In this document: in pieces, positions 7,973 through 23,375 of the stretch
Layout of the letters: each line of letters begins with the position of its first letter
Numbering within the stretch: position 1 is the stretch's first letter
Source: Haliotis rubra
Taxonomy: Eukaryota
Direction: 5' to 3'
DNA length: 64,000 bases
NCBI RefSeq assembly: GCF_003918875.1
Contig: NW_025767577.1
Span: 310,001-374,000 of the forward strand
Made by a program: the position numbers and the translations under genes
The notes under the pieces: model-generated
What the model was told of the DNA's origin: nothing
Databases searched by the model: none
What the model saw: the letters and a program-made list of their open reading frames with translations, nothing else

Positions 7973-8498
7973 CTTTATAATGTAACGATAGGTACGATTA
8001 TAATATCATATATTGAGATGAAAGTATCTTCTAGATAGATGTTATTATCTTCCCGTAGATGAACATTCATTGTATCTTCTGGGACTGTGGCTCCAATACG
8101 CTTCCATGAATTGTATCTCGTATAGTTATATCAGTTTTATTCCCGTGACATCAATATGGCTTCATATCGACTGACTTCTTGACTACAAAAATGCGTGTTC
8201 AAGGAGAATGTTTCTGATGGTAAAATATCTCGTGACATGGGGTTCCAGTGCAAATGAGATTGGTGTGGCTTTGGGAACGCTCCATCACTACTATTCATCT
8301 TTGTCCAATTTCAGTTTTCTTAATCCAGTTTGAAAATATTAGAGACATGATATCCGACTGAAGTTAAAAATGGAAGAAAGTGAATAGGCTTTCTTTCTTA
8401 TGAATTACAAGTCAAGAGTTTACAATAAGAACTTGGAACAAGTTAAGAAAGGCCGTGTTTGCTACCAACATGAATAGTCCGGGAAGTATTCCTAATTT

Positions 8499-8773
8499 TT
8501 AGCTTACTGTGGTGTGTTTTTCCTTTGGCGCTTCTTCGTCTTGTAATTGAGCGTCGTGCATCTTTTGCCGTCTTGATAAGAAGTACTCACCGACCCTTCT
8601 ACGATAGCGCACTAGAACTATGATAACGATAATAATCACACCCAGGACAGACAATCCGACTGCGAGGCCCGTAGTGTTGTCTGGATCTCCAGGGGACACG
8701 CTGTCCACCGTTGTTGGTGTTGGTGTTGTAGATGTCTCTGGTGCAGTATTTCCAGGGCTGGAGTTGGGTGTTT
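8499..8773 (-). CDS. Receptor exon 10: S/T/P stalk, TM helix, cytoplasmic tail
   Basis: Acceptor ttgtttcag; TM GLAVGLSVLGVIIIVIIVLV followed by stop-transfer RYRRR. Confidence 0.85.
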
Positions 8774-11700
8774 CTGAAACAAGGGAGGGTAATTAATTTC
8801 TTCTATTGTAATGAAGTAACCCGTGCTTGCCGTAAGAGGCGAGTAACGGGATTGGGTGGTCAGGCTCGCGTAGATCGATGCTCATGCTGTTGATCACTGG
8901 TTTGTCTGGTCCAGACTCGGTTATTTACAGACCGCCGCCATATAGCTGGAATATTGCTGAGTGCGGCGTAAAACTAAACTCACTCACTCTCTTGTAATGA
9001 AAACATCTTGCTCATACCCATTAAAGAATCGCCATAAGTGAGTAAGTGACTGAGTGAGTGAGTGACTTTATAGTTTTACGCTGCTTTTAGCAATATTCCT
9101 GCAATATCACGACGGGGGACAACAGAAATGGGCTTCACATATTATACCCATGTGGGGAATCAAACCCGGGTCTTAGACGTGACGAGCAAACACTTTAACC
9201 ACTAGGCTACCTCACCGCACCGACTCACCACGAAGAGTGGAGAGCATTTGTGGAAATAGAAAACAAGATTCAATTTAATACAAGACATTCTTTTTTTTTG
9301 GTTCTGTGTACTGAGTTAAATCACATAGCCTATTGTACAGTTCCTGTAGCATACTTGGCATAACAGAGTGAGTAGCTCCGAAGTTGGCGTGTAGAAACAA
9401 TGAATATGGAAGAAAGAGGAAAGAATACAGACCAACACTATTTCCAGGAACCCACCCACTGTGGCTTCCACAAAATTGAAAGTGCGACTACTGGTAATTT
9501 AGATGTCATACTATTGAATAGAATGTGTAATCACCGGCAGTAGCTGTTGATTGGGATCTTTCTGTTAGAGTTGATGTTATGGTAGCTGCTGCCTCTGCGG
9601 AAAGACAAAAAGAAATACACGCATTAATTTCCAAAGTAGCATGTTAATATTATAGATAGTATTAGAATTTGTTTACAATACTGACATTTTGGAAATATGA
9701 GCACCATTTCCATATAGAAATGAACCTTATAGTCAGCACCTAAGTGATGAACATTTCTCTTTAATGTATTACTTTCAAATTGAAGTAAACAGCTGGCTTG
9801 CATTTCGTCTTCTGGTCTTGTGACCTTCGTTTTCCTATCAATAAGACAAAACATGTTCAACGGTCTTCGGTGTGACGAGCGATCACTTGAACCACAAAGA
9901 CATCCCACAACCAACGAGAAACGAAGATCAGTTTCAGGGTCTCGATCCACAAAGCATTCGTAGCGCTATGACATTCGTAAGCATAGTTAAATATAGAATT
10001 ACGACAGATCGTACGTAACGTTACGACGCTCTGTGGATCGGGACCCTGGCGTCATAAGTCAGTGCAGAAATATAAGCACGTGTATAAAAATTGTACGAAC
10101 CACTCAGTCTGTTAACACCATCGCAGGCAATCGTCGTTGTGCTGTTGCCACACACGAGGCTAACGCCGACGTCCCCAAAACTATCAGTTGTGACGAGGAA
10201 GTATGATTGTAAGGATAAATCCATGATATCGTCCATTGTCTGGTTCTGTTGCAGCGTCTGGGTAATGGTCCCAGTAGTCAGGAGGACTCCAGCCTGTTGA
10301 GGACAGTAGAAGCTCCTGATGTCAACTACCAGAGTCAGGTCAGTTCCAGGTTCCAGAGAAGCTGTGTTCTTATCACTCGTGATGGTACACAGAGGTGGAC
10401 CTGGTTATAATATATACAGTGTACATGTATCCCAGCAATGTTATGCGAACGTAATGAATCTCACACCAAATACATAACATTAACAGCAATAAAAGTAACA
10501 CCTTCAAATACCTTTTGACAAGGTATTTCCAGTAAGATCAGCATTTATTCAGTCATGCATACATGCATATATATTTTAGAAACAGGCGTGAAACTGTCGA
10601 CAAAGTAAATTCTACATTACAAGTCAGTGTGTAGATTATGTCGTAGTAGCATTGTGTATAGCTGCTTCGGATACGCCCCTTTCCAGAAAAAATATCTGGT
10701 ATGATAATGAATGTGATCATTGAAAAAAAACAAAGGCGTAAACTTCCGAAAAGATAAGACCTTGAGATTTGCCCCTCAATCCCTGGAGAGTTATCACAAA
10801 ACTAGAAATAGATATAATACAACTTGAAAAGAGAAGGTTTTTTATGAAACAAAAAAGAAATCTTATAGTGCATAGTCTAATACAAAAATATCTCAACTTA
10901 AAAGGTAGAAAGTTCCACGAATTATTCGTGGATTTTGCAAAGCTTTTTGATTCTGTGCAGCGGAATAAACTATGGGGACTTCTGCAATCGCACGGTCTTA
11001 GTGGTAAAATGAATAAAATGTTCAAGAGTACATGTATATACGAAAATGTTAAAGTGTGTGTAAGGAATAAGCATGAAGTATCTGTTCATTTTTTAGTGAA
11101 CTAGTGTTAGACAAGGCTGTATTTTCGGCTCTTTCATTTTTATGTTTTTCATTAATAAATTGGCAATGCTAATATGTGACACTTGTACGAACCCAACTAC
11201 ATCCAGATACAATACAACTATTTCTACTACTCCTGCAGACGATGTTGTATTATTCCATAGTACTGTTAGCGGTTTACGGAAACAAATCAGTATAAATTTT
11301 GCGTAAACAGAGACAAAACCAAAATTATCGACTTGGAAAGGTGGAAAAATTCTAAATTTGAAAAATGGTATTACAACTACTCCAAACTGCTCTATAAGTA
11401 TATTTCTCTGATAGCCTTTCCTGGTCCAAACACACAAAACAAGCGCCAGTACAAGCCTTGAAAATCGTAATCGGTGTTTGTAAAAATATGAGATCTTTTG
11501 GTGAAATATCCTTTAACTCATTCTTTAAAATATTCGATATGAGGATAAGTCCAATACTTCTATATGGCTCTGAAATATGGGGATTACAACAATATGACAG
11601 TATTAAAAGTTATCATTTATATGCACCCAAAAAGCGTATTGGTGTAAAACCGAACACATGTAATATGATGGTTTACGGAGAAATAGGTAGAGTCCCCTTG

Positions 11701-14700
11701 TTTATAGATTCATCCATTAAAGCCATAAAGAATTGGGTAAGATTACTGCATATGCCATGCCACAGGTTTCCGAAAAAATGTTATGATATGATGAAATTGT
11801 ATGACGAAAATGGGAAAAGAAATTGGGTGACTGATATTAGAGAGTTGTTGTGCAAAACAGGTTATGGTTATGTATGGTGTGATCACAATGTACAGTCCCA
11901 TGCAAATTTTATCATATCACTTACACCAAGAATGAAAGATATGTATTTCCAATCTTGGTCGGAATCATTACATCTATCAACAAAATGTTTATATTATAAT
12001 CATTGGAAATCGGATATACGTTTTGATGACTATTTAGCATCTCTCTCTCGTTTTCGTTGCTCTTCCCATTAATTATTTATTGAAACTGGCAGATATGCAG
12101 GTGTGCAAAGAGAAAACAGAATATGTCAATTATGTAATATGAATACTGTTGATATCTCCTTCTAATCTGCCCTGTTTATACGACTCTACGAACGATCTAC
12201 CTAAAGCCATACTATTATAAGCATCCAAGTGTAAGAACATTAATTTCACTATTAACAGATACTACCACATCAATATTACAGAATCTGGCAATGTACATCT
12301 ATTTCGTTATGAGTTTAAGGAAAAGGAATTGTTTTAGAAAAGAATTTGTAAATGACTTCTGACTACTCATGTAAACTTTAAATGTACTACAGGTCTATAG
12401 CCTCTTCATGTCCTGAATAAAGGTTGATTGACTATATTAACACGGAAAACCTGGACAAAGTTTTACCAATAGTTATGACAGTATATATTATTGAAAATTG
12501 GACATGTAAAATTAATTGACCACGTTTCACAATCTTCAAACGGCCAAGGGTCACATTGCGAACGAACGTGCGATACCGGTATCTTGTCTGTTGTCTGTCT
12601 AACACTACGCTAATCTAATTCACTGTGAACTTCACTCATCAACACCGATGTCTTCAATATGAAAATTATCATATAATCCCGTCAAGATAGAGTAGCTTAA
12701 GTGCGCAGTTGGCACCGTATCGTCAGTCGAGTTAGGCAATAGGATTTAGATATAGCAACTGAAGTTCACAACAACTTAATCGTCAGTGTATCAGTCAATG
12801 GGATTATCTATGATAATTGGAATAGGTATTAAACAGGGACGACACACAGTCACAAATCGTTCAGTGACTGCGCTGTAATAAATTCTTCGTCTATTTACTC
12901 AGGTTTTGTGTTGTGTTGTGTTGTGTTGATTGTGGGTTGGTATGGTCAGATCTCTTCCCAAGCGAACTGATTCCCCAAACTCTCGCGTTTTAATAACCCC
13001 ATTATACAAAATAACAGTTTATCATAATAATAAGACATAAGCATAGATAACAATACATCTATAAGAGATCAACATTCAAAACTAGGCCACCGGTAAAGGC
13101 ATCATAGAGACTAGGTCAAAATATTTAATTTACGGACAAAAATCAAAGTGGAGATATTAGGGTTAGTGATACTGACGACGGTGAACACACTGGAAAAGCA
13201 AATTGTATAATCCAAATTTGTTCTGTCTCAAAATGAGCAAGGAAATGTCACCGAAAATGAACATGAATACAATAAACTATGTTTATAACGAACACGTTTA
13301 TAACTCGTGGTTAATACAAACAATTTTTTCGTCTTTGCTACTGGGCGGTGATTAAGCGTTGGCTCGTCACGCCGAAGACCCGGGTTCGAATCCCCACATG
13401 GGCACAATGAGTGAAGCCCATTTCTGGTGTCCCCCCGCCGTGATGTTGCTGGACTGTTGCTAAAAGCGGCGTAAAACAAAACTAAGTCAGTCAGTCAGTC
13501 AGTTAGTCTTTGCTACTTCTTGTTTCTCTTAGTCGAAATGGGTTTAACCAACTATGGTTGTAACGAAATTAAGTCAGCGGTTCCTCGGGGTTCGTTACAA
13601 CCGTAGTTTACTATTGCTGACGACTTGAATTTCAACTTACTTTTCTGTAGCCTCTTCACCCCATCACAAGTCAGAGGACGCCGTCCGTCACATATAAAGT
13701 CCAGCGTTACATCACCTAATCGTGTGATGTCTACACTGAAGTTTGTGTTAGCGGTGAAGTCTGTTACAACACTGACGTTGTGTCTCATCCCCAACTGTCC
13801 AGTCACATCACCAGTAGTGAGATCAAAGCCAGTCTCCACAGAACAGTAGTAGCCTGTGATGTCCACAGTCAGAGTCAGCTGTGTTCCAGGTTCCAGGGAG
13901 GCGGGGTCCTCGTCACTGCTGATGTTACAGTGTGGAACCTCTGATAGCAGGAAAACAAAATATAAACAATGTGATGACTTGGTATTTCACTCAAACATTT
14001 ACACAGTTGAAAAAGTTACTTAAACATCCACTACCTTTTGAATGCATATGATACGAGTATTACCATCATGTGTTAGAAATGAAACACTGTGCCCGTCCCA
14101 GTGACGACACATGTCAGCAGATAAGCATCTACCTATTTATCTATCGAAAGAGGATGTATTGTTTAATTCTGAAGGCACGAATGATTGTAGCAATAGGTAA
14201 TATAGTAGCATGGCCATATCATTTCTGGGATTCCTGATTGCAGGACAATATGGAGAAACAGAAGTAAAAACCACATGAAGACTTTCTCAATGTATATGAT
14301 ACCAGTATTACCATTGTGTGTTAGGAATGCTAAATGAAAACTGCTCGTCAAAGTGATGATATATGTTGTATATTCTGACGGCATGGATGATTGTCCCGAT
14401 AGTCAATATGGTAACTGTGGGATATCTGATAGCAGGACAATATGGACAAGATATTCAAAAACCCTGACGAAGGGCAAGAAGTATCCCAGAAACGTTGTGA
14501 AAAAACAAATCAAGAAGTTGTTATCCATAAGATTTTTCTTGTATTACTACACCAACTTCTAAATGCCTTGATTGTTAAATTGACAAATGACGCGTTCGTT
14601 TATACGTTATTTTGTTCCATCATATTCTGAATGTACTTTGAAAGTTGTAGACATTTTATAGTGCCCTACAATGTATGCATTTTGAAAAATCTTTTTCAGT

Positions 14701-17700
14701 GTTTCAGGATGTAGACAGTTTTATTCTATTGTTCCTATTGTCTGACCTCTAAAACAGAATTTGGTGAAAACTGCTACAATTATTTAGTTACTGCTACATT
14801 TATATACATGTATATCCAAAATTATCACATATCAAGTTATGCAATATAATTAACTTGTTAACGTCACATTAAATTTATCAATTTGCTTTGAACAAATGCC
14901 CATAATACTTGTTTTCATTCATTGTCGAATACAGTGATCAAAATTGACTGTTATTTTGTTTTCGGCCAAAGATTTTCATATCATGTATAAGTGAACCGCC
15001 ACCAAATTATGTTTGCAAATTTGGCAACACTTTTTAGTCAGTCTATGACAGTGTGTCAGACTTTAGAAAATCAGAAACAATGTAGAGACAACAACCAATC
15101 AGATAACCACGGTCTGGTCTGATGGTGGGGAAAGACAACCAATCAGATAGCCACGGTCTGGTCTGATGTTTGGAGAAGACAACCAATCAGATAGCCACGG
15201 TCTGGTCTGATGTTTGGAGAAGACAACCAATCAGATAGCCACGGTCTGGTCTGATAGCCACGGTCTGGTCTGATGGTGGGAGAAGAAAACCAATCAGATA
15301 GCCACGGTCTGGTCTGATGGTGGGGGAAGACAACAGGTCTGATAGCCACGGTCTGGTCTGATGGTGGGAGAAGACAACCAATCAGATAGCCACGGTCTGG
15401 TCTGATGGTGGGATAAGACAACCAATCAGATAGCCACGGTCTGATCTGATGGTGGGGGAAGACAACCAATCAGATAGCCACGGTCTGGTCTGATGATGGG
15501 GGAAGACAACCAATCAGATAGCCACGGTCTGGTCTGATGGTGGGGGAAGACAACCAATCAGATAGCCACGGTCTGGTCTGATTCTGGGGGAAGACAACCA
15601 ATCAGATAGCCACGGTCTGGTCTGATGGTGGGGGAAGACAACCAATCAGATAGCCACGGTCTGGTCTGATGGTGGGGGAAGACAACCAATCAGATAGCCA
15701 CGGTCTGGTCTGATGGTGGGGGAAGACAACCAATCAGATAGCCACGGTCTGGTCTGATGGTGGGGGAAGACAACCAATCAGATAGCCACGGTCTGGCCTG
15801 ATGGTGGGAGAAGACAACCAATCAGATAGCCACGGTCTGGTCTGATTCTGGGGGAAGACAACCAATCAGATAGCCACGGTCAGGCCTGATGGTGGGAGAA
15901 GACAACCAATCAGATAGCCACGGTCTGGTCTGATTCTGGGGGAAGACAACCAATCAGATAGCCACGGTCTGGTCTGATGGTGGAGGAAGACAACCAATCA
16001 GATAGCCACGGTCTGGCCTGATGGTGGGGGAAGACAACCAATCAGATAGCCACGGTCTGGTCTGATGGTGGGAGAAGACAACCAATCAGATAGCCACGGT
16101 CTGGCCTGATGGTGGGTGAAGACATTCAACACTGAAAACATTATTATGCTCTATGTATAACAAGTTCTTTATATATTGTGATGCGACGTTTGGATATAGA
16201 TTCGTATACCGTTGTCAAGCAGTGTGTTCTTACTTAATAGTGTTCACGAATGGTGTTTCAAAGTAACAGGACAGTGGGTCCTGTAAGCTTCAGATGTTTG
16301 TCTGACCCATAGAATAAAATTAAACACACATTTTATAAACAGCAAACAAGTGTCACATGTCACATATAACAACTTCAGTCAAAGTCATTGGGAAATATAC
16401 AGTCAGACACTGGGTTGTAGACTTCTATCAGACCTTTGGCAAATCTGCCAGAGGGTCAGACGCTATTCGTGAACACTGTGTTAGATGTACATGAGTCGGT
16501 TCTGTGTTATGTTACTTTACACTTGCTTGACAACGGTATACGAATCTATACCGAACGTCGCATCATAATATAACAAGAAGCTGTTGTTTATCAAGTAGTG
16601 TACCTTTTCTTATCATTCACCAACTTCTAAAATACCAATTAAACAGATTACTCAACACTCACGAACTGCCGTCAGTTGACACACTTCGACAGGAGTGGCA
16701 TCCACTACAGTCGCATCCGCGATCTTCCATGTGCCAGCATCTGCTGCTCTATTATTCTCAATAGTAAGCGTGGAGTTTGCGGTGTTCATCGTTGCTCTGT
16801 ATCCTGCAGTAGGGCTGCAGCTGGGGTTGCAGGTGACGACGTAGCGACCATCACTTGGTCGGACCCACATGAAGCCTGTATAGTTGCTTCTGTCACCTAC
16901 AATGGTGAACTCTTTTCCAAGCTGACCAGCACCGCCCGGACACGTGGAATCTACCTGTGGGGGATCTGCAATGAAAGGCAGTGTGTTGCTGTTAATGTAT
17001 GTACACTACCCGTTCTGCCTTAGTGGGGAAGTAGTCTATTGTACCGCAGTAAAATGCTTGATAGCAGTGTTAGCATCAACATCTAAAAGTCCCATCTATT
17101 CCAAATGAGACGTCGTCGATGAATAAACCTTTTTTATCAAAATCATAACAGCTTCTAATAAAATGCCGTGTATAGACCTGAAGTTATTGCACCAAAGTAA
17201 TGATCANNNNNNNNNNNNNNNNNNNNNNNNNNNNNNNNNNNNNNNNNNNNNNNNNNNNNNNNNNNNNNNNNNNNNNNNNNNNNNNNNNNNNNNNNNNNNN
17301 NNNNNNNNNNNNNNNNNNNNNNNNNNNNNNNNNNNNNNNNNNNNNNNNNNNNNNNNNNNNACTGGGATATGAAACACCATGTCAGCGAGCCTGATCACCC
17401 GATCCCGTTAGTCGCCTCTTACTACAAACATGAGTTGCTGAACACCAACTGTAACCTGGACCATCACGGGTCTGTTTAATTGATTGTATTACGGGAATTG
17501 ACTGATTACAGGTAATTATTTTCCGATATCTCTCATATAATACCCACAGTAGCTACACCTGATGCAGACTAGATTATTGGCATAGACAGAGCAGGGTATT
17601 GCTTCAAAACACAATCAAACAAGGGCTGAAACCGGACAAGGGGTGACTACTTGTCGCAGTTTACAAACAAGGCTGATGCCTAGATCGTTACAACTTAGCC

Positions 17701-20700
17701 AGCGGTAAGCCTGCTGTTTGCGCAGTGACGACAGCTTAACAAGCCGATGACCTGTTTGAAGCAAACTGTACTTGTTGGACCATTATCAGATATCGTACGA
17801 ATATTCGCTACTACAACCAAGAACCGCACCCGAGGCGGCTCCACTCAGGCTCCGCGCTCACCTCGGCGACCCCAGTACACGTTGTGACTCCTACTCGTTG
17901 CCAACTACCTTGAAGTGCTTCATGTCCATTACAAAATAAACAAAGTCATTCCCAGTGCTTCGGAATTGGGGAACATTATGTCCAATATTCCCAGGTATGG
18001 CTGCGTTTCAGTTATTGTATTCAACTATCGAGGAATCATTGTGTAGTTGGATTGGTCTTCGGAGAGATTCCCGGAATTGGGTGCATCTTCACACGTGAAT
18101 TACAATAACTCCGCCTTTTATTTAAATGGTGAATGCTAGTATGTGTTAGCTTGTTATGTTTATACTTGACAACGATACTATACAGAAACAATAAACTAAT
18201 CGTAACAGAAATAGCGGATAATCTGTACCTCGTGAATTCGGGGTTGCAAGTCTTGACCTTTTAGTCAGTTAAGTTAAGGGAATACCTGTACTTGGAAAAG
18301 GCGTTGTTGTTGTTGCTGTTGTTGTTGGTGGTGTTGTTGTTGTTGGTGTTGTTGTTGTAGTTGTTGTTGCAAACACGATTGTCTCTGTTGTTTCCGTTGA
18401 TGGCGTCACTGTTGGGAAAATATCAAATTAATGTCCTCCATATCTGGTAAAGACAGTTTGCGACTAATACTACTCCACTGTTATGATAGATCATAGGAAA
18501 ACGATTCAAAGTAGAAATAAAATGAATATGACAAGAAATGAGAACAGCTTTGTAATGTCTCCTAATGTCTTTGTTGTGCAATTATTTTATTAGTGTTATT
18601 TTATTTCAGTTTTGTGGATGAGTGTGAAGACATCTACCTTCATCTTCTGTTACCACGATCACATCTACAACCACCACTCACTGCGTACCATCTGACACTA
18701 AAATATGGATTCTCGTGTTTACATACCTGTCGTTGTCCAAGGTATCGTGGAGTCATTCACTGGTAAGAGAGATGTTGATAATTAAGCCAAATATCGTATT
18801 AACTGATCATGCAGGTTACATGCAGGTTATATTTACTGTCAGACAGAGGAAAAGATACACTTGAAAGTTGGGTTTGAGGTGAGGTGAAATGGAGTTTACT
18901 TGAGACTGTGTATGACGACGTCCATGCATGTGTATGTGTATGTGTATGTGTGGCTGCTTGTACTAGCCCAGACTGAAGATGGTTTTATAGTGCTAGCCCA
19001 CTGAGATACCATGCCGCAGTGAAGCATGAATACCCCACTCAGACACATTATACTGACTCCGAGCCGACCAGTCCTTGTTGTACCCATTAATGCCGAGCGC
19101 CAGGCAGGGACCAACAAGTACCATATTTTAGCGTCTTTTGGTATGACGCGGCCGGGGATCGAACTCGCGACCTTCCGCTCTCCGGGCGGACGCTCTAACC
19201 ACTACACCACGGAGGCGGTCTCACATTGATCTAACGAAAACATACACATGTAAACTATTCATATGCTAGCATGCTTGTACTAACAACAGACTGCCACGGT
19301 TTGATGTACCTCAGTAATGTTCATACATAAATATAGTGGCAGTGTTGAATTATGTCATTAGGTTCTTGAATACCCACAAAGTGGAATTAGAGTATTGAAA
19401 GGTTTTTAAGTTCTGCTCCGGAAACGAGCACTACCACCAATTTCAATCAAAGTAAAACTTGTCGCCACGGAACAGCAAAAAATATTTTAGTCAGATATCC
19501 CAAACTACCAAAAAGAACCAGGGGCCCTATTCTCGAAACGTTCGTAGCCCTAAGAATTTTTAACTTTGACCGTAGCCAATGTCTTAGGAATGGGCTTAAG
19601 AAGTTCGTAGGGCTACGTTTCGAGAATAGCTAGCCTGTTCACCACCAGACCTATCTATGTGCCAAGTTTGGTGACGAGATTTGTTATGGTTTTTATGTTC
19701 TGCTCCGGAAAAGACGAATTTGCACGGACGGACGGAGTCCAAAATGCTTCTGCCTTATCCCTTCTGTGTGTTCCACTTTATCCTTTACTTACTGCCAGTA
19801 ACTACCCTAGCCTATATATACCCTGGTATATATGCTCTGCTTTATCCTTTACTCCCTCCTAGTTGAGGGGGTTATAAAAGTCTGCAACCAAAGCTGCTTT
19901 GTTCGATGTTCAACATCGAAGCAGAGTGTAATCTCTTTGGAGATGTTATTTACAGAAGGGCAACACTTATGACATGCCACGGATCGGACGTTTATTTGAT
20001 ATTTCTGTTCAACACTATAACCAGTGCAACAGCTCGGGCACTTCCTGGGTGGAGACCAACGAGTGACAGAACAGTATGTAACAAGTTATAGATATATAAA
20101 CCCCAAACTGTTACGCATGGGCATTCATGCATACTCAACAACTATCTGATTTACGATAATGGATGTATGTATACGAAGTGCAATCTAGGAGATGATTTTA
20201 TTGTTTAGCTAATTTTCGGAATATGTCTATGTTTACAAACCAGTAGATGTTGGTGTATCAGATGTCGTCGAAGACGTATCTGCAAGAATCAAGAAAAATA
20301 ACACTCATCACCCATGTCATATAATACTATACCAACAATGTACATATACATTTCCTTTGTTAAATACTGTTCTATGCACGTCTTCTCATGGGCCTGGCGT
20401 ATGTGTCCTGCTTTATCCTTTACTTACTACACAAGTTATGCTTAGCCTGGTCTGTGTGTCCTGCTTTATCCTTTACTTACTACACGAGTTATGCTTAGCC
20501 TCGTCTGTGTGTTCTACTTTATCCTTGACTCACTACACAAGTTATGCTTAGCCTCGTCTGTGTGTCCTGCTTTATCCTTGACTCACTACACAAGTTATGC
20601 TAAGCCAGGTCTGTGTGTCCTGCTTTATCCTTTACTCACTACACAAGTTATGCTTAGCCTCGTCTGTGTGTTCTGCTTTATCGTTTACTTAGTCGCAATA

Positions 20701-23375
20701 ACTACCCTAGCCTATGAGTTTTGTTTTGTGCATGTATTCTGCTTTATCCTTTACTCACTTCTGCTTTATCCTTTACTTATAGTGGCTACCCTGGTATATA
20801 TAGTCTGCTTTATCCTTTACTTATAGTGGCTGGTTATGTGCTCTACTTTCTGTTTTACTTAGTAGAAACCCGATCTCTGCTGTTGTAGCATGCTAAACTG
20901 GCACGTAGAAAGGAAGTATATATTAGAAGTTGTAGCGACATTGCCAAACAGCCTCCTAGTCAGGTAAGGACAAACATTGTGGATGAACAACACGAATCAA
21001 TATCGAAACGTCGCATCACCTGAATAAAGAAGTTGTTCATCCATAAAGTCTGTCCTTATCTGACTCTCCATCTTCGAAAATATGTTGCTCTAAGAAGTAA
21101 TCCTCAAACTCCAAATCGATCCTAATCGACCAGTAAATACTATAATGCCATATAGTTCCACGATCTGATAAAGCAATTTGATTTGTCCATATCTGACATG
21201 TTATCAGTCATTCATTGGCCATTTATCAAATGCAGTCAAATGCAAGGTTCATGAAAATAATATGTACTGGCGCATTTCCTTTGAGTTCTTATTAATTGCT
21301 TACAATCATTACATGTGCGTATGAGCTTGTTTTTATCTTCGTTTTTTATACAACCAGGAGAAGGCATTTGCAGGACTCATTATGATACTTCACACATTTC
21401 AACCTACCTGTCATTGTCTCAGGTGATGTCGAGGCATTCACTAGTAACAGAAATATTGATAATTAAACCAAACATCGTATTAATTCATTAATCAAGGCAT
21501 TCAAACGTCACCTTTGTTTCACACACACGTTGCTGGACAAAATTAAGTATACAAAAATTAAAAAACCCNNNNNNNNNNNNNNNNNNNNNNNNNNNNNNNN
21601 NNNNNNNNNNNNNNNNNNNNNNNNNNNNNNNNNNNNNNNNNNNNNNNNNNNNNNNNNNNNNNNNNNNNNNNNNNNNNNNNNNNNNNNNNNNNNNNNNNNN
21701 NNNNNNNNNNNNNNNNAATCAAGCAAGCAAAAACCATTTCAAAGTAAAACATATGGAGTCGGCTAAGCACGGCAAACTTGAGTTCTATAAGACAACTGTG
21801 ATACTTCTAATCATATTCACCATCCATTAACCACTTCTCGTGTGTTTCAGTTGCTTCCACTAACCAACATTGTACACTGTCTGTTGCCACAAGTCGCATA
21901 AGACACCCTTTCATTCAAACTTCTATGGCGGCGGTGGGGTAGCCGAGTGGTTAAAGTGTCCGCTCGTCATGCTGAACACCCGGGTTCGATTCTTGTGTGA
22001 AGCCTATTTCTGGTTTCCCCCTCCGTGATATTGCTGGGATATTGCCAACAGCGGCGTACCATACTCACCCACACGACAATGTCCATACCTCGTACAATGT
22101 ATAAACACAAAGGAAGAGATTTCTGTGTTCCGCAGAGACAGGCAGTGGCTAACATTGAACGAAAGAATGACACCCGGTGTTCCGAAAGGTCAGAAACAGA
22201 TGTCAGCGTACGCAATGAGAAAAGTGTTGTTTAACGCCGCACTCAGCAATATTCCTGCTATATGGCGGGGGTCTGTAAATAATCGAGTCTGGACCAGACA
22301 GTCCAGTGATCAACATGATGAACATCGATCTACACAATGTGCCAACCAAAGTCAGCGAGCCCGTTAGTCGCCACTTACAGAAAAAATATAATGCTTATCG
22401 AAACAATACCGTTTTCAGTATTTTCAATTTCACACAGACAAAACAAATGACGTACTATTGGGATATCTATCAACATAAAGTGTTTTGTGTATTTATATGG
22501 AATGCGACTCACAAGCTTTATCCACTCATTACTAACTTCTATACATTTGCAGAAGCAGGTATCCATTGAATTGTAATGTCAGTCTATGCAATACAACAAG
22601 AATATATTGGTGAGTGAGTGAGTGAGTGACTTTAAATTCAAAGTCACATCGGCAGTATTTTAGCCGTGACTGTGTCGTGACTATGAATGTTACAAATTTT
22701 TAAATTTATTATGAATAAAAACAAGCGTAGTCAACATATATTTACCTGTCTGCAAAGGACTTTAAAATAACTAGTCTATGGCAGCTTTACACGTAAGAGT
22801 AATATAGTCATGCCAATAATTGTTGTCCCCACCCCAAGCCCCACACACACCCCACCCCCTCTCCAATTAAAAAAAAATGAAGGGGGTGACAACTACTATT
22901 GGCATGAGTATATATAACCATAAAACGCTATTCCTAGATGCAACAATACAATATCAAAATGAGCCAACAACTGAAGGTAGATCACGATACTAGGGACCAT
23001 GGGACTAACAGAACCTTTTGTACCTGCATGGACACTAGTTGGATGTACACCATCCCTTTAGCTGGTGGCAATTTACACAAATTTAGCCATTAGTGTAAAT
23101 GAACATGTAGACTTCGATTAAACAAAGTGGTCAGATTAAATATACTTTAAAAGACGTGGTCTTAAATTCACTCTCAGGGGACAATATTATTACAATACTT
23201 TAACCCCCTTTGAGGATACAGCCATCAACAATCTCAGTTACTATTTTGATCTACCAGTTTGAAATACCATTGATCTATTTACAAAACATATTATTCAAAG
23301 GAGAATACTGTTCTTACCACATGACGTCGAAGCCAGGATCACTAACACCACCATCAGAGTATAATCCTGCGACAT
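8499..23375 (-). CDS. Type I membrane glycoprotein (signal peptide - mucin - Ig-like - 2x four-Cys domain - stalk - TM - short tail), about 507 aa. Coding exons: 23375-23318, 21440-21408, 20279-20241, 18759-18727, 18408-18286, 16965-16663, 13940-13641, 10400-10101, 9594-9535, 8773-8499
   Basis: All introns are GT-AG and phase 1; the exons join into one open 1524-nt frame from MSQDYTLMVVLVILASTSC to ...KHTTVS*. Confidence 0.8.
8815..8990 (+). mobile_element. SINE family B copy
   Basis: gcttgccgtaagaggcgag core and (actc)n tail. Confidence 0.8.
9037..9221 (-). mobile_element. SINE family A copy
   Basis: Similar to 358-526. Confidence 0.85.
9535..9594 (-). CDS. Receptor exon 9 (60 bp, S/T-rich stalk EAAATITSTLTERSQSTATA)
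   Basis: Strong acceptor tttttgtctttccgcag, donor G|gtgatt, phase 1-1. Confidence 0.7.
9937..10046. mobile_element. Palindromic Harbinger-like MITE
   Basis: Terminal IRs gggtctcgatccaca / tgtggatcgggaccc with CWG flanks. Confidence 0.6.
10101..10400 (-). CDS. Receptor exon 8 (300 bp): second four-Cys domain
   Basis: PPLCTITSDKNTASLEPGTDLTLVVDIRSFYC...GDVGVSLVC...IACDGVNRL; paralog of exon 7. Confidence 0.85.
10700..12430 (+). mobile_element. Degenerate non-LTR retrotransposon (RTE-X/CR1-group-like ORF2 remnant) in a receptor intron
   Basis: FVDFAKLFDSV, RQGC, ADD, PILLYGSEIWG and RFRCSSH.L.IETGRY motifs with stops and frameshifts; AATAAA at about 12416. Confidence 0.8.
13343..13505 (+). 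mobile_element. SINE family A with 12-bp TSD
   Basis: TSD gtctttgctact at 13331-13342 and 13506-13517. Confidence 0.9.
13641..13940 (-). CDS. Receptor exon 7 (300 bp): first four-Cys domain
   Basis: Acceptor cctgctatcag, donor A|gtaagt; VPHCNISSDEDPASLEPGTQLTLTVDITGYYC...GDVTLDFIC...LTCDGVKRL. Confidence 0.85.
14450..14570 (+). mobile_element. Penelope-like pLTR relic with hammerhead-like motif
   Basis: CTGACGA-stem-GAAACGTT followed by gaagttgt...caccaacttctaaa, shared with 16520-16640, 20975-21090 and 44130-44250. Confidence 0.55.
15090..16125. repeat. Minisatellite, 44-bp unit (caaccaatcagatagccacggtctggtctgatggtgggggaaga), about 23 copies
   Basis: Direct tandem repeats without unique spacers. 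Confidence 0.95.
16150..16640. mobile_element. Inverted pair of Penelope-like pLTR relics
   Basis: 16178-16260 is the reverse complement of about 16465-16570 (cttgacaacggtatacgaatctata...cgtcgcatca). Confidence 0.55.
16663..16965 (-). CDS. Receptor exon 6 (303 bp): Ig-like (V/I-set-like) domain
   Basis: Acceptor ttcattgcag, donor C|gtgagt; strand-C Trp (FMWVRP) and STLTI...DAGTW motif. Confidence 0.85.
17365..17472 (-). mobile_element. SINE family B, partial, next to a gap
   Basis: cctgatcacccgatcccgttagtcgcctcttac. Confidence 0.75.
18286..18408 (-). CDS. Receptor exon 5 (123 bp): Thr-rich mucin segment
   Basis: Acceptor ttttcccaacag, donor G|gtattc; (ACA)n-encoded TTTTTTTPTTTTPPTTT. Confidence 0.8.
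18727..18759 (-). CDS. Receptor microexon 4 (33 bp, VNDSTIPWTTT)
   Basis: Acceptor tctcttaccag, donor G|gtatgt; paralog of 21408-21440. Confidence 0.75.
18877..19222 (-). mobile_element. SINE family C (tRNA-derived, about 350 bp)
   Basis: tRNA head gaccgcctccgtggtgtagtggttagagcg...gttcgatcc; near-identical copy at 24365-24720. Confidence 0.85.
19380..19880 (+). mobile_element. Probable Helentron-associated non-autonomous element (HINE-like), with a MITE nested at 19521-19635
   Basis: Repeated gttctgctccggaaa, (cgga)n microsatellite, terminal hairpin ccctc..gaggggg then ttataaaa. Confidence 0.4.
20241..20279 (-). CDS. Receptor microexon 3 (39 bp, DTSSTTSDTPTST)
   Basis: Acceptor tttttcttgattcttgcag, donor G|gtttgt, phase 1-1, S/T-rich. 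Confidence 0.7.
20395..20830. repeat. Minisatellite, 53-bp unit, degenerating rightwards
   Basis: ctgctttatcctttacttactacacaagttatgcttagcctcgtctgtgtgt repeats. Confidence 0.85.
21408..21440 (-). CDS. Receptor microexon 2 (33 bp, VNASTSPETMT)
   Basis: Acceptor tttctgttactag, donor G|gtaggt. Confidence 0.75.
21927..22070 (+). mobile_element. SINE family A copy
   Basis: Similarity to family A. Confidence 0.75.
22225..22378 (-). mobile_element. SINE family B copy, internally deleted
   Basis: Similarity to family B. Confidence 0.7.
22610..23250 (-). mobile_element. Retroposon 3' segment (family E) with a small IR element nested at about 22802-22912
   Basis: (gagt)n tail + gtcacatcggcagtatt + actgaaggtagatcac...ctgcatggac; also at 28155-28560, 36600-36850, 37972-38545 and 54180-54290. 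Confidence 0.6.
23318..23375 (-). CDS. Receptor coding exon 1: signal peptide MSQDYTLMVVLVILASTSC
   Basis: aaaaATG start, hydrophobic core, donor G|gtaaga; upstream acceptor ttcacag at 23394. Confidence 0.8.

Follow-up and report, generated by a model that had tools for sequence, protein, structure and literature searches.

A structurally intact, seemingly unannotated gene of an abalone immunoglobulin superfamily family in Haliotis rubra, with a putative role at the cell surface

Do ten short exons, scattered among repeats in the genome of an abalone, still form an intact gene, to which family would such a gene belong, and what might its product do? The exons lie in Haliotis rubra on contig NW_025767577.1 of RefSeq assembly GCF_003918875.1, of which we analysed positions 310,001 to 374,000 of the forward strand, a stretch of 64,000 nucleotides that is called the window below. 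An earlier interpretation made from the letters of this window (the sequence-only reading) had proposed that a hidden gene for a cell-surface receptor occupies positions 8499-23375. To our knowledge molluscs have no antibodies, and we know of no thorough charting of their expanded families of surface receptors. The reading that we favor, with a probability of about 0.6, is that the locus represents a structurally intact gene of a tandemly expanded Haliotis family of the immunoglobulin superfamily (IgSF), and that its product is a cell-surface adhesion or recognition molecule that pairs through its V domain. The gene itself is well described; the function is one that we infer.

The window was read on both strands, and the gene model was rebuilt on the minus strand; the sequence-only reading's ten exon sizes (Table 1), GT-AG boundaries and phase-1 introns were reproduced exactly. 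The ten minus-strand exons (window 8499-23375) sum to 1,524 nt, that is, 507 codons and a stop (codon 508). This terminal stop is the only one in the joined exons, which agrees with the single uninterrupted frame of about 507 amino acids (aa) that had been proposed. Every internal exon is preceded by an AG that follows a pyrimidine-rich tract and is succeeded by a GT donor, and all introns are in phase 1. The ATG has in-frame stops upstream of it, and 357 nt beyond the stop codon there is an AATAAA.

The predicted product is a type I membrane glycoprotein of 507 aa, in which a signal peptide is followed by a Thr-rich N-terminal stalk, three four-Cys domains, a Ser/Thr-rich stalk, a transmembrane helix and a cytoplasmic tail, the signal peptide and transmembrane helix being assigned by hydropathy. 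The N-terminal Ser/Thr-rich part measures about 90 aa. The 72 internal residues of exons 2-5 consist of Ser, Thr and Pro to 76% and include two N-glycan sequons, both on 33-bp microexons, and the Thr-rich tip is probably O-glycosylated. Exons 6, 7 and 8 each encode one domain of about 100 aa with exactly four cysteines. The membrane-proximal Ser/Thr/Pro-rich stalk (52 aa) leads into a hydrophobic helix of 19 residues with a mean Kyte-Doolittle value of 3.3, and the basic tail of 36 aa starts with RYRRRVGEYFL and ends in TTVS. The model supports the proposal of a modular type I membrane protein with one domain per phase-1 exon. All sequence searches with the gene itself were made with single-exon products. 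Every one of these products went without a match in Pfam, where only sub-threshold noise was returned, and Rfam gave no match over the whole locus.

Annotated proteins of two other abalones provide the closest full-length comparison. One of them (P0104) is the 478-aa isoform X2 of H. rufescens LOC124124272, an 'uncharacterized protein' in RefSeq, and two others (P0106, and P0107, which is named 'mucin-5AC-like') are its counterparts in H. cracherodii. All three share the gene's order of parts, in which a signal peptide and a Ser/Thr stalk lead to domain 1 and a pair of four-Cys domains, and these to a second stalk, a transmembrane segment and a tail with RYRRRVGEY[LF]L, and the signal peptide of exon 1 resembles those of P0104 and P0107. 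The earlier description of the architecture as unusual is overstated, since these annotated proteins share the layout down to the N-terminal Ser/Thr stalk. They differ from the gene in sequence, with 56-76% identity per domain, and in the length of the N-terminal stalk, about 40 aa as against about 90 in the gene. The exon pieces map colinearly on all three proteins, with single split codons between domains; one residue is left unaligned at each domain boundary of P0104, as a phase-1 split codon would produce. Exon 10 shows 58-62% identity to the three tails. The three proteins are unstudied computer predictions, and they are either orthologs or co-orthologs of the gene.

For the H. rubra copy itself we found no public protein model, as the description of the gene as hidden implies. 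This search used full-length relatives as queries, among them P0116 with 86% identity, and covered candidates of 206-836 aa; an annotation as pseudogene or non-coding RNA would escape it. Short public contigs that carry family open reading frames (ORFs; L057 and L058) were considered as possible cDNA and set aside, being single domain exons of genomic origin.

How large is the family, and how far does it extend? A six-frame search of the H. rubra assembly itself (1.378 Gb in 2,855 contigs) returned no fewer than 94 matches to the four-Cys domain 2, of which nearly all lie in open frames, and 39 or more to domain 1. Both domain types cluster together on contigs C250, C877, C321, C418, C128, C21, C2413, C2672, C881, C867 and others, some of which may be haplotigs. 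When 1.84 billion representative proteins were searched with a profile, only 82 matches emerged. The domain profile matches P0001-P0069 have E-values of 1e-203 to 3e-10, and the few weak matches outside the family that were scanned with Pfam (P0070, P0071, P0075, P0076 and P0082) carry bacterial or canonical Ig-type domains. Named matches were sampled, and all 30 came from Haliotis (H. rubra, H. rufescens, H. cracherodii and H. asinina), under the names 'uncharacterized', 'mucin-5AC-like' or 'mucin-2-like'. These two results bear out the claim that the gene is lineage-specific. It shows the arrangement by which we recognize the family: after domain 1 come one or more four-Cys domains, all of these domains being encoded by single phase-1 exons, and then a stalk and a transmembrane segment; precomputed Pfam assignments show that some relatives join domain 1 to canonical I-set Ig domains. 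The gene is a member of a large, tandemly expanded, Haliotis-restricted IgSF family whose proteins already stand in public sets without a family name. A classical or gel-forming mucin, considered as an alternative identity, was rejected: neither this gene nor P0003, P0007 and P0060 contain VWD, cystine-knot or SEA domains, and the Ser/Thr parts are short. Literature searches, both general and by LOC identifier, found no paper specific to the family.

The folds of the domains were examined with the help of two alignments, A2 (30 sequences) and A3 (21 sequences), built from copies in the H. rubra genome. The AlphaFold2 model of domain 1 (predicted local distance difference test, pLDDT, 89.5) is a nine-strand beta-sandwich that falls within the V-set fold. 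Its Foldseek neighbors are the T-cell receptor (TCR) V-beta domain, the antibody light-chain variable domain, D1 of nectin-like molecule-1 and IG1 of Dpr, with E-values from 2e-5 and TM-scores of 0.6-0.73. Profile comparison with the PDB gave weak matches that were all to the IgSF (contactin-2 Ig1 at E 1e-3, titin, TCR V-alpha and CD4); no Pfam Ig family was recovered even up to E 10, and domain 1 is not recognized by a curated Ig profile. Trp33 in strand C is invariant in 21 copies, and the strand-F motif is kept as D75-x-G77-x-W79, with Ile in place of the motif Cys. Neither strand B nor strand F carries a Cys, and the canonical B-F disulfide is not present. Cys8/Cys95 and Cys45/Cys49 are invariant instead. 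The prediction that one domain is an Ig domain is upheld by the Foldseek match, and the model points to an Ig domain that resembles the V-set but has its cysteines in non-canonical places.

The second domain type had been listed as being of unknown kind. This part of the earlier interpretation was not sustained, because the four-Cys domains are modeled as ordinary Ig-like sandwiches: the AlphaFold2 model of domain 2 (pLDDT 93.6) is a seven-strand, two-sheet sandwich. Foldseek found no match below E 1e-3 for it in the PDB. VIA, an aligner that is independent of Foldseek, aligned it over 84-94 residues at Z 7.3-8.3 with LILR/PirB, with D2 of VCAM-1 and ICAM, and with barrels of the factor XIII/transglutaminase and arrestin types, and its closest shape in the ESM Atlas belongs to an I-set cluster (TM-score 0.68). 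For domains 2 and 3 there was no significant profile match in the PDB, no Pfam family and no usable match in the ESM Atlas feature search. Judged from the models, domains 2 and 3, which are 41% identical to each other, are generic Ig-like beta-sandwiches without a special relative and do not represent a new fold. Profile-profile comparison and BLASTP detected no relationship between domain 1 and domains 2 and 3. The spacing from first to last Cys is 87 residues in both domain 1 and domain 2, and this equality hints at a disulfide stapling strands A and G that is common to the two domain types.

V-domains commonly pair through their C'C''/FG face, and the predicted behavior of domain 1 follows this pattern. 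When two copies of domain 1 were modeled with ESMFold2, the interface score (ipSAE) was 0.45, compared with 0.16 for the best control, and three runs agreed in 100% of contacts with a partner pLDDT of at least 87. Among solved structures, 21 of 30 homodimers and none of 23 monomers attain the mark that this score passes; on eukaryotes it is attained by 17 of 29, but by only one of the seven that lack an older solved relative. The interface is symmetric and is formed by residues 32, 39-54, 70, 74 and 83-89, which make up the C'C''/FG face. The model supports a homodimer of domain 1 and does not demonstrate it. We can then picture a product that would act at the cell surface in adhesion or recognition, with its membrane-distal V-like domain pairing with a like domain via the GFCC'C'' face, in cis or in trans, in the manner of nectins, CAR and JAM. 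The mucin segments would lengthen the ectodomain and shield it, and the short tail, instead of transmitting a signal of its own, would connect with the cortex or a partner chain.

What the tails say about signaling bears directly on the alternative that survives best. It holds that the gene is a short-tailed member of an immune-type family resembling paired receptors, which would recognize non-self or altered-self ligands and either signal through a partner or serve as a decoy beside relatives with an immunoreceptor tyrosine-based activation motif (ITAM). A motif G/R-x-Y-[LIF]-[LV] is found 8-12 residues after the transmembrane segment and is kept within the closest subfamilies. It is neither an ITAM, nor an inhibitory counterpart (ITIM), nor a YxxPhi signal, and it may resemble the basic juxtamembrane segments of ICAM-2 and CD43 that bind ERM/FERM proteins. 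Among 57 family tails, four carry an ITAM-like YxxL-x10-Yxx[LI], a count reached in none of 1,000 shuffles. Tail exons of this kind also adjoin four-Cys exons in the H. rubra genome, at C1255:24261-24383 and C1110:40814-40936, where they are 78% identical to the tail of P0015. With ITAM-like tails both in relatives and in its own genome, the family thus comprises members with signaling tails and members with short ones, the gene being one of the latter. Tandem expansion, the fast divergence from the closest relatives in H. rufescens and H. cracherodii and a raised ratio of non-synonymous to synonymous substitution rates (dN/dS) would likewise suit an immune-type family. Against it stand the tail of the gene, which contains neither an ITAM (Yxx[LI]-x6-12-Yxx[LI]) nor an ITIM, a transmembrane helix without a charged residue for adaptor pairing and an overall dN/dS below 1. 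We consider this alternative unlikely. Bolder still would be an abalone-specific, diversifying immune or self/non-self system that uses two Ig-like domain types without the canonical disulfide and a paired set of ITAM-bearing and short-tailed members, with this copy functional and pairing through its V domain; we would call such a system improbable.

A paralog lies about 94 kb away on the same contig, in ungapped sequence (C2687:413598-427453; loci L053-L056), and holds exons 1, 2, 3 and 5-10 in the order of the gene. Nucleotide identity is 91-100% per exon, except for exon 5 (82%, with its 24-bp insertion) and exon 4, which is absent. Exons 6 and 9 are each 3 bp shorter in the paralog, and a 2-bp insertion in its exon 10 shifts the frame before the transmembrane segment, so that this segment and the tail are removed. 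Other indels between the two copies are in frame. Mismatch divergence of the introns is 3-8%, and microexons 2 and 3 are 97-100% identical compared with 88.5% for intron 2; like the in-frame indels, this speaks for coding constraint. The protein that NCBI predicts for the paralog (P0116, LOC124262625) measures 374 aa, begins within intron 5 and lacks a signal peptide; its junctions 6/7, 7/8, 8/9 and 9/10 agree with our gene model.

Two runs of N interrupt the window within the gene (Table 1). Both sit in introns, and therefore no codon or reading frame crosses them; continuity of the scaffold over the gaps is not provable from the window alone. The distance from exon 1 to exon 2 is 1,897 bp in the ungapped paralog and 1,935 bp in the gene, and that from exon 5 to exon 6 is 1,360 and 1,443 bp, respectively, a comparison that uses exon positions only, both gapped introns being excluded from the paralog alignments. 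A further microexon of 33-39 bp may conceivably be hidden in the gaps, though nothing requires one, and in relatives the Ser/Thr stalk runs directly into domain 1. Exon 4 is part of a 332-bp segment (18710-19041), an indel without counterpart in the paralog. The likeness of this exon to exon 2, which extends to the flanks of both, points to a microexon duplicated locally. Because the paralog lacks the segment and the exon has the appearance of an exon-2 copy, its use is the least certain of the ten.

Public sequence reads add a view of variation. The two public runs that we found come from one sample and consist of DNA contigs; they are silent on splicing because DNA contigs cover the introns as well (about 96.5% identity; region 8100-14000). 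The contigs of these runs (X1 and X2; window 8100-10612) represent a third variant of the gene, about 96.5% identical, which is neither this copy nor the paralog; like the paralog, they carry an in-frame 3-bp deletion in exon 9. In the list of exonic differences, which is an incomplete subset, 13 of 15 are non-synonymous and seven of 15 match the state of the paralog, a sign that the gene varies.

The introns had been described as rich in transposable-element insertions, and word depths of 1e3-1e7 in the public DNA contigs, together with satellites of 44 and 53 bp, corroborate this. The intervals concerned are listed at the end of Table 1. A reverse-transcriptase reading of two intronic ORFs was dropped after Pfam gave nothing.

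Table 1. Exons of the gene, assembly gaps and intronic repeats in the window (minus-strand exons in order of transcription; last column, residues of H. rufescens P0104 on which the exon product maps colinearly)
Feature	Position	Strand	Length	Description	Paralog 94 kb away	P0104 residues
Exon 1	23318..23375	-	58 bp	Start codon and signal peptide, core TLMVVLVILA; ends in phase 1	96.6% identical	
Exon 2	21408..21440	-	33 bp	Mucin microexon with one N-glycan sequon (NAS)	97% identical	
Exon 3	20241..20279	-	39 bp	Ser/Thr microexon	100% identical	
Exon 4	18727..18759	-	33 bp	Microexon with NDS sequon; similar, with flanks, to exon 2	Absent	
Exon 5	18286..18408	-	123 bp	Thr-rich mucin-like stalk	24 bp longer, in frame	
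Exon 6	16663..16965	-	303 bp	Domain 1, V-set-like Ig (modeled); Cys 8, 45, 49, 95		66-158
Exon 7	13641..13940	-	300 bp	Domain 2, four-Cys (4, 32, 83, 91) seven-strand Ig-like beta-sandwich (modeled)		160-253
Exon 8	10101..10400	-	300 bp	Domain 3, paralog of domain 2 with the same four Cys		260-358
Exon 9	9535..9594	-	60 bp	First part of membrane-proximal Ser/Thr-rich stalk		
Exon 10	8499..8773	-	275 bp	Rest of stalk, transmembrane helix (LAVGLSVLGVIIIVIIVLV), 36-aa tail, stop		387-475
Assembly gap	17207..17360	.		N run within intron 5		
Assembly gap	21569..21716	.		N run within intron 1		
Satellite	15091-16124			Intron 6; 44-bp unit, about 24 copies, 94% matches		
Tandem repeat	20402-20689			Intron 2; 53-bp unit, 5.4 copies		
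Repeat	8691-9281			Word depth 1e5-1e7; ends look tRNA-derived (like a short interspersed element); no match in Rfam or Pfam		
Repeat	13222-13615			As for 8691-9281		
Repeat	9676-10069			Word depth about 1e3-1e4		
Repeat	10858-13024			Word depth about 1e3-1e4		

Relative to the paralog, exons 6 and 7 have dN/dS values of 0.36 and 0.64, and the pooled value is 0.64; exon 8 has a value of 2.1 (13 non-synonymous and two synonymous changes), for which we claim no positive selection because the counts are too small. When eight close copies of domain 2 are compared in pairs, dN/dS ranges from 0.32 to 0.83 and falls with divergence, which indicates weak purifying selection on a fast-evolving family and not neutrality.

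Several observations count against the reading that we prefer. That we found no public model of the protein from this copy may mean that it is expressed weakly or not at all, and the only runs found for the locus are DNA contigs. The sister copy has already lost its transmembrane segment by frameshift, and the high dN/dS values relative to it, pooled and in exon 8, are compatible with relaxation. The success of domain 1 in the homodimer calculation may reflect the memory of the model for V-domain dimers, and the marks of the tool are calibrated mainly on microbes. Finally, our literature searches gave nothing specific on a ligand, tissue or function of any family member. The missing protein model and RNA, the frameshifted paralog and the dN/dS values also speak for the next alternative, by which the locus is a recently duplicated copy, silent or decaying, whose reading frame is intact through youth and not through function. 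However, the ten exons, with their eighteen splice sites and 507 codons, remain intact in the face of an intron divergence from the paralog of 3-8%, the copy retains all twelve cysteines as well as the residues that are invariant in the family, and part of the raised dN/dS may come from the branch of the broken paralog. On balance we regard a silent or decaying copy as unlikely.

Haliotis is known for fast-evolving gamete proteins, and Ig-like domains of about 100 aa with four cysteines would, by resemblance alone, suggest a protein for gamete recognition, with four-Cys domains of the ZP-N kind as in VERL of the abalone egg coat. We rejected this very improbable reading for want of any ZP-N match by profile or structure: Pfam gave no Zona_pellucida, the PDB profile search no ZP or VERL chain, and the top 50 structural matches of either aligner no ZP, VERL or uromodulin.

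With the IgSF gene of probable adhesion or recognition function retained as the best explanation, the locus adds an intact and seemingly unannotated member to an abalone-only family. Neither of the domain types of this family has a Pfam model, and our literature searches found no paper that describes it; alignments A2 and A3, together with the confident models, could seed definitions of the two domain families. The immediate gain would be a corrected H. rubra gene model and a testable hypothesis of V-like domain pairing. Should the family indeed serve immunity or allorecognition, it would be relevant to the disease resistance of farmed and endangered abalone.

Among known systems, the nectin, CADM and CAR/JAM families offer a parallel in plan: a membrane-distal V-type domain, further Ig-like domains, a single transmembrane segment and a short tail. 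D1 of nectin-like molecule-1 is itself among the Foldseek matches of domain 1, and it is through the C'C''/FG face that the V-V homodimer is predicted to form. The abalone gene departs from these families in showing no detectable sequence homology to them, in a domain 1 without the canonical disulfide and in its TTVS end, which is not a C-terminal PDZ motif; moreover, we know of no N-terminal mucin tip in any of them. The TIM family, MAdCAM-1 and the stalk of CD8 resemble the gene in combining Ig-like domains with O-glycosylatable Ser/Thr/Pro segments and a transmembrane segment. Unlike them, the gene has an additional, membrane-distal mucin segment and three Ig-like domains, no sequence relationship to them was found, and the six-Cys IgV domain of TIM is absent. 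The third comparison concerns the LILR/PirB, KIR and OSCAR receptors, which share with the abalone family a mixture of ITAM-like and short tails and a tandem expansion, and which are among the top structural matches of domain 2 (Z 7.3-8.2). Here, however, the match is that of a generic sandwich, to which unrelated folds score equally, and the gene carries no tyrosine signaling motif. Any likeness of the abalone family to the paired Ig-like receptors of vertebrates would be convergent.

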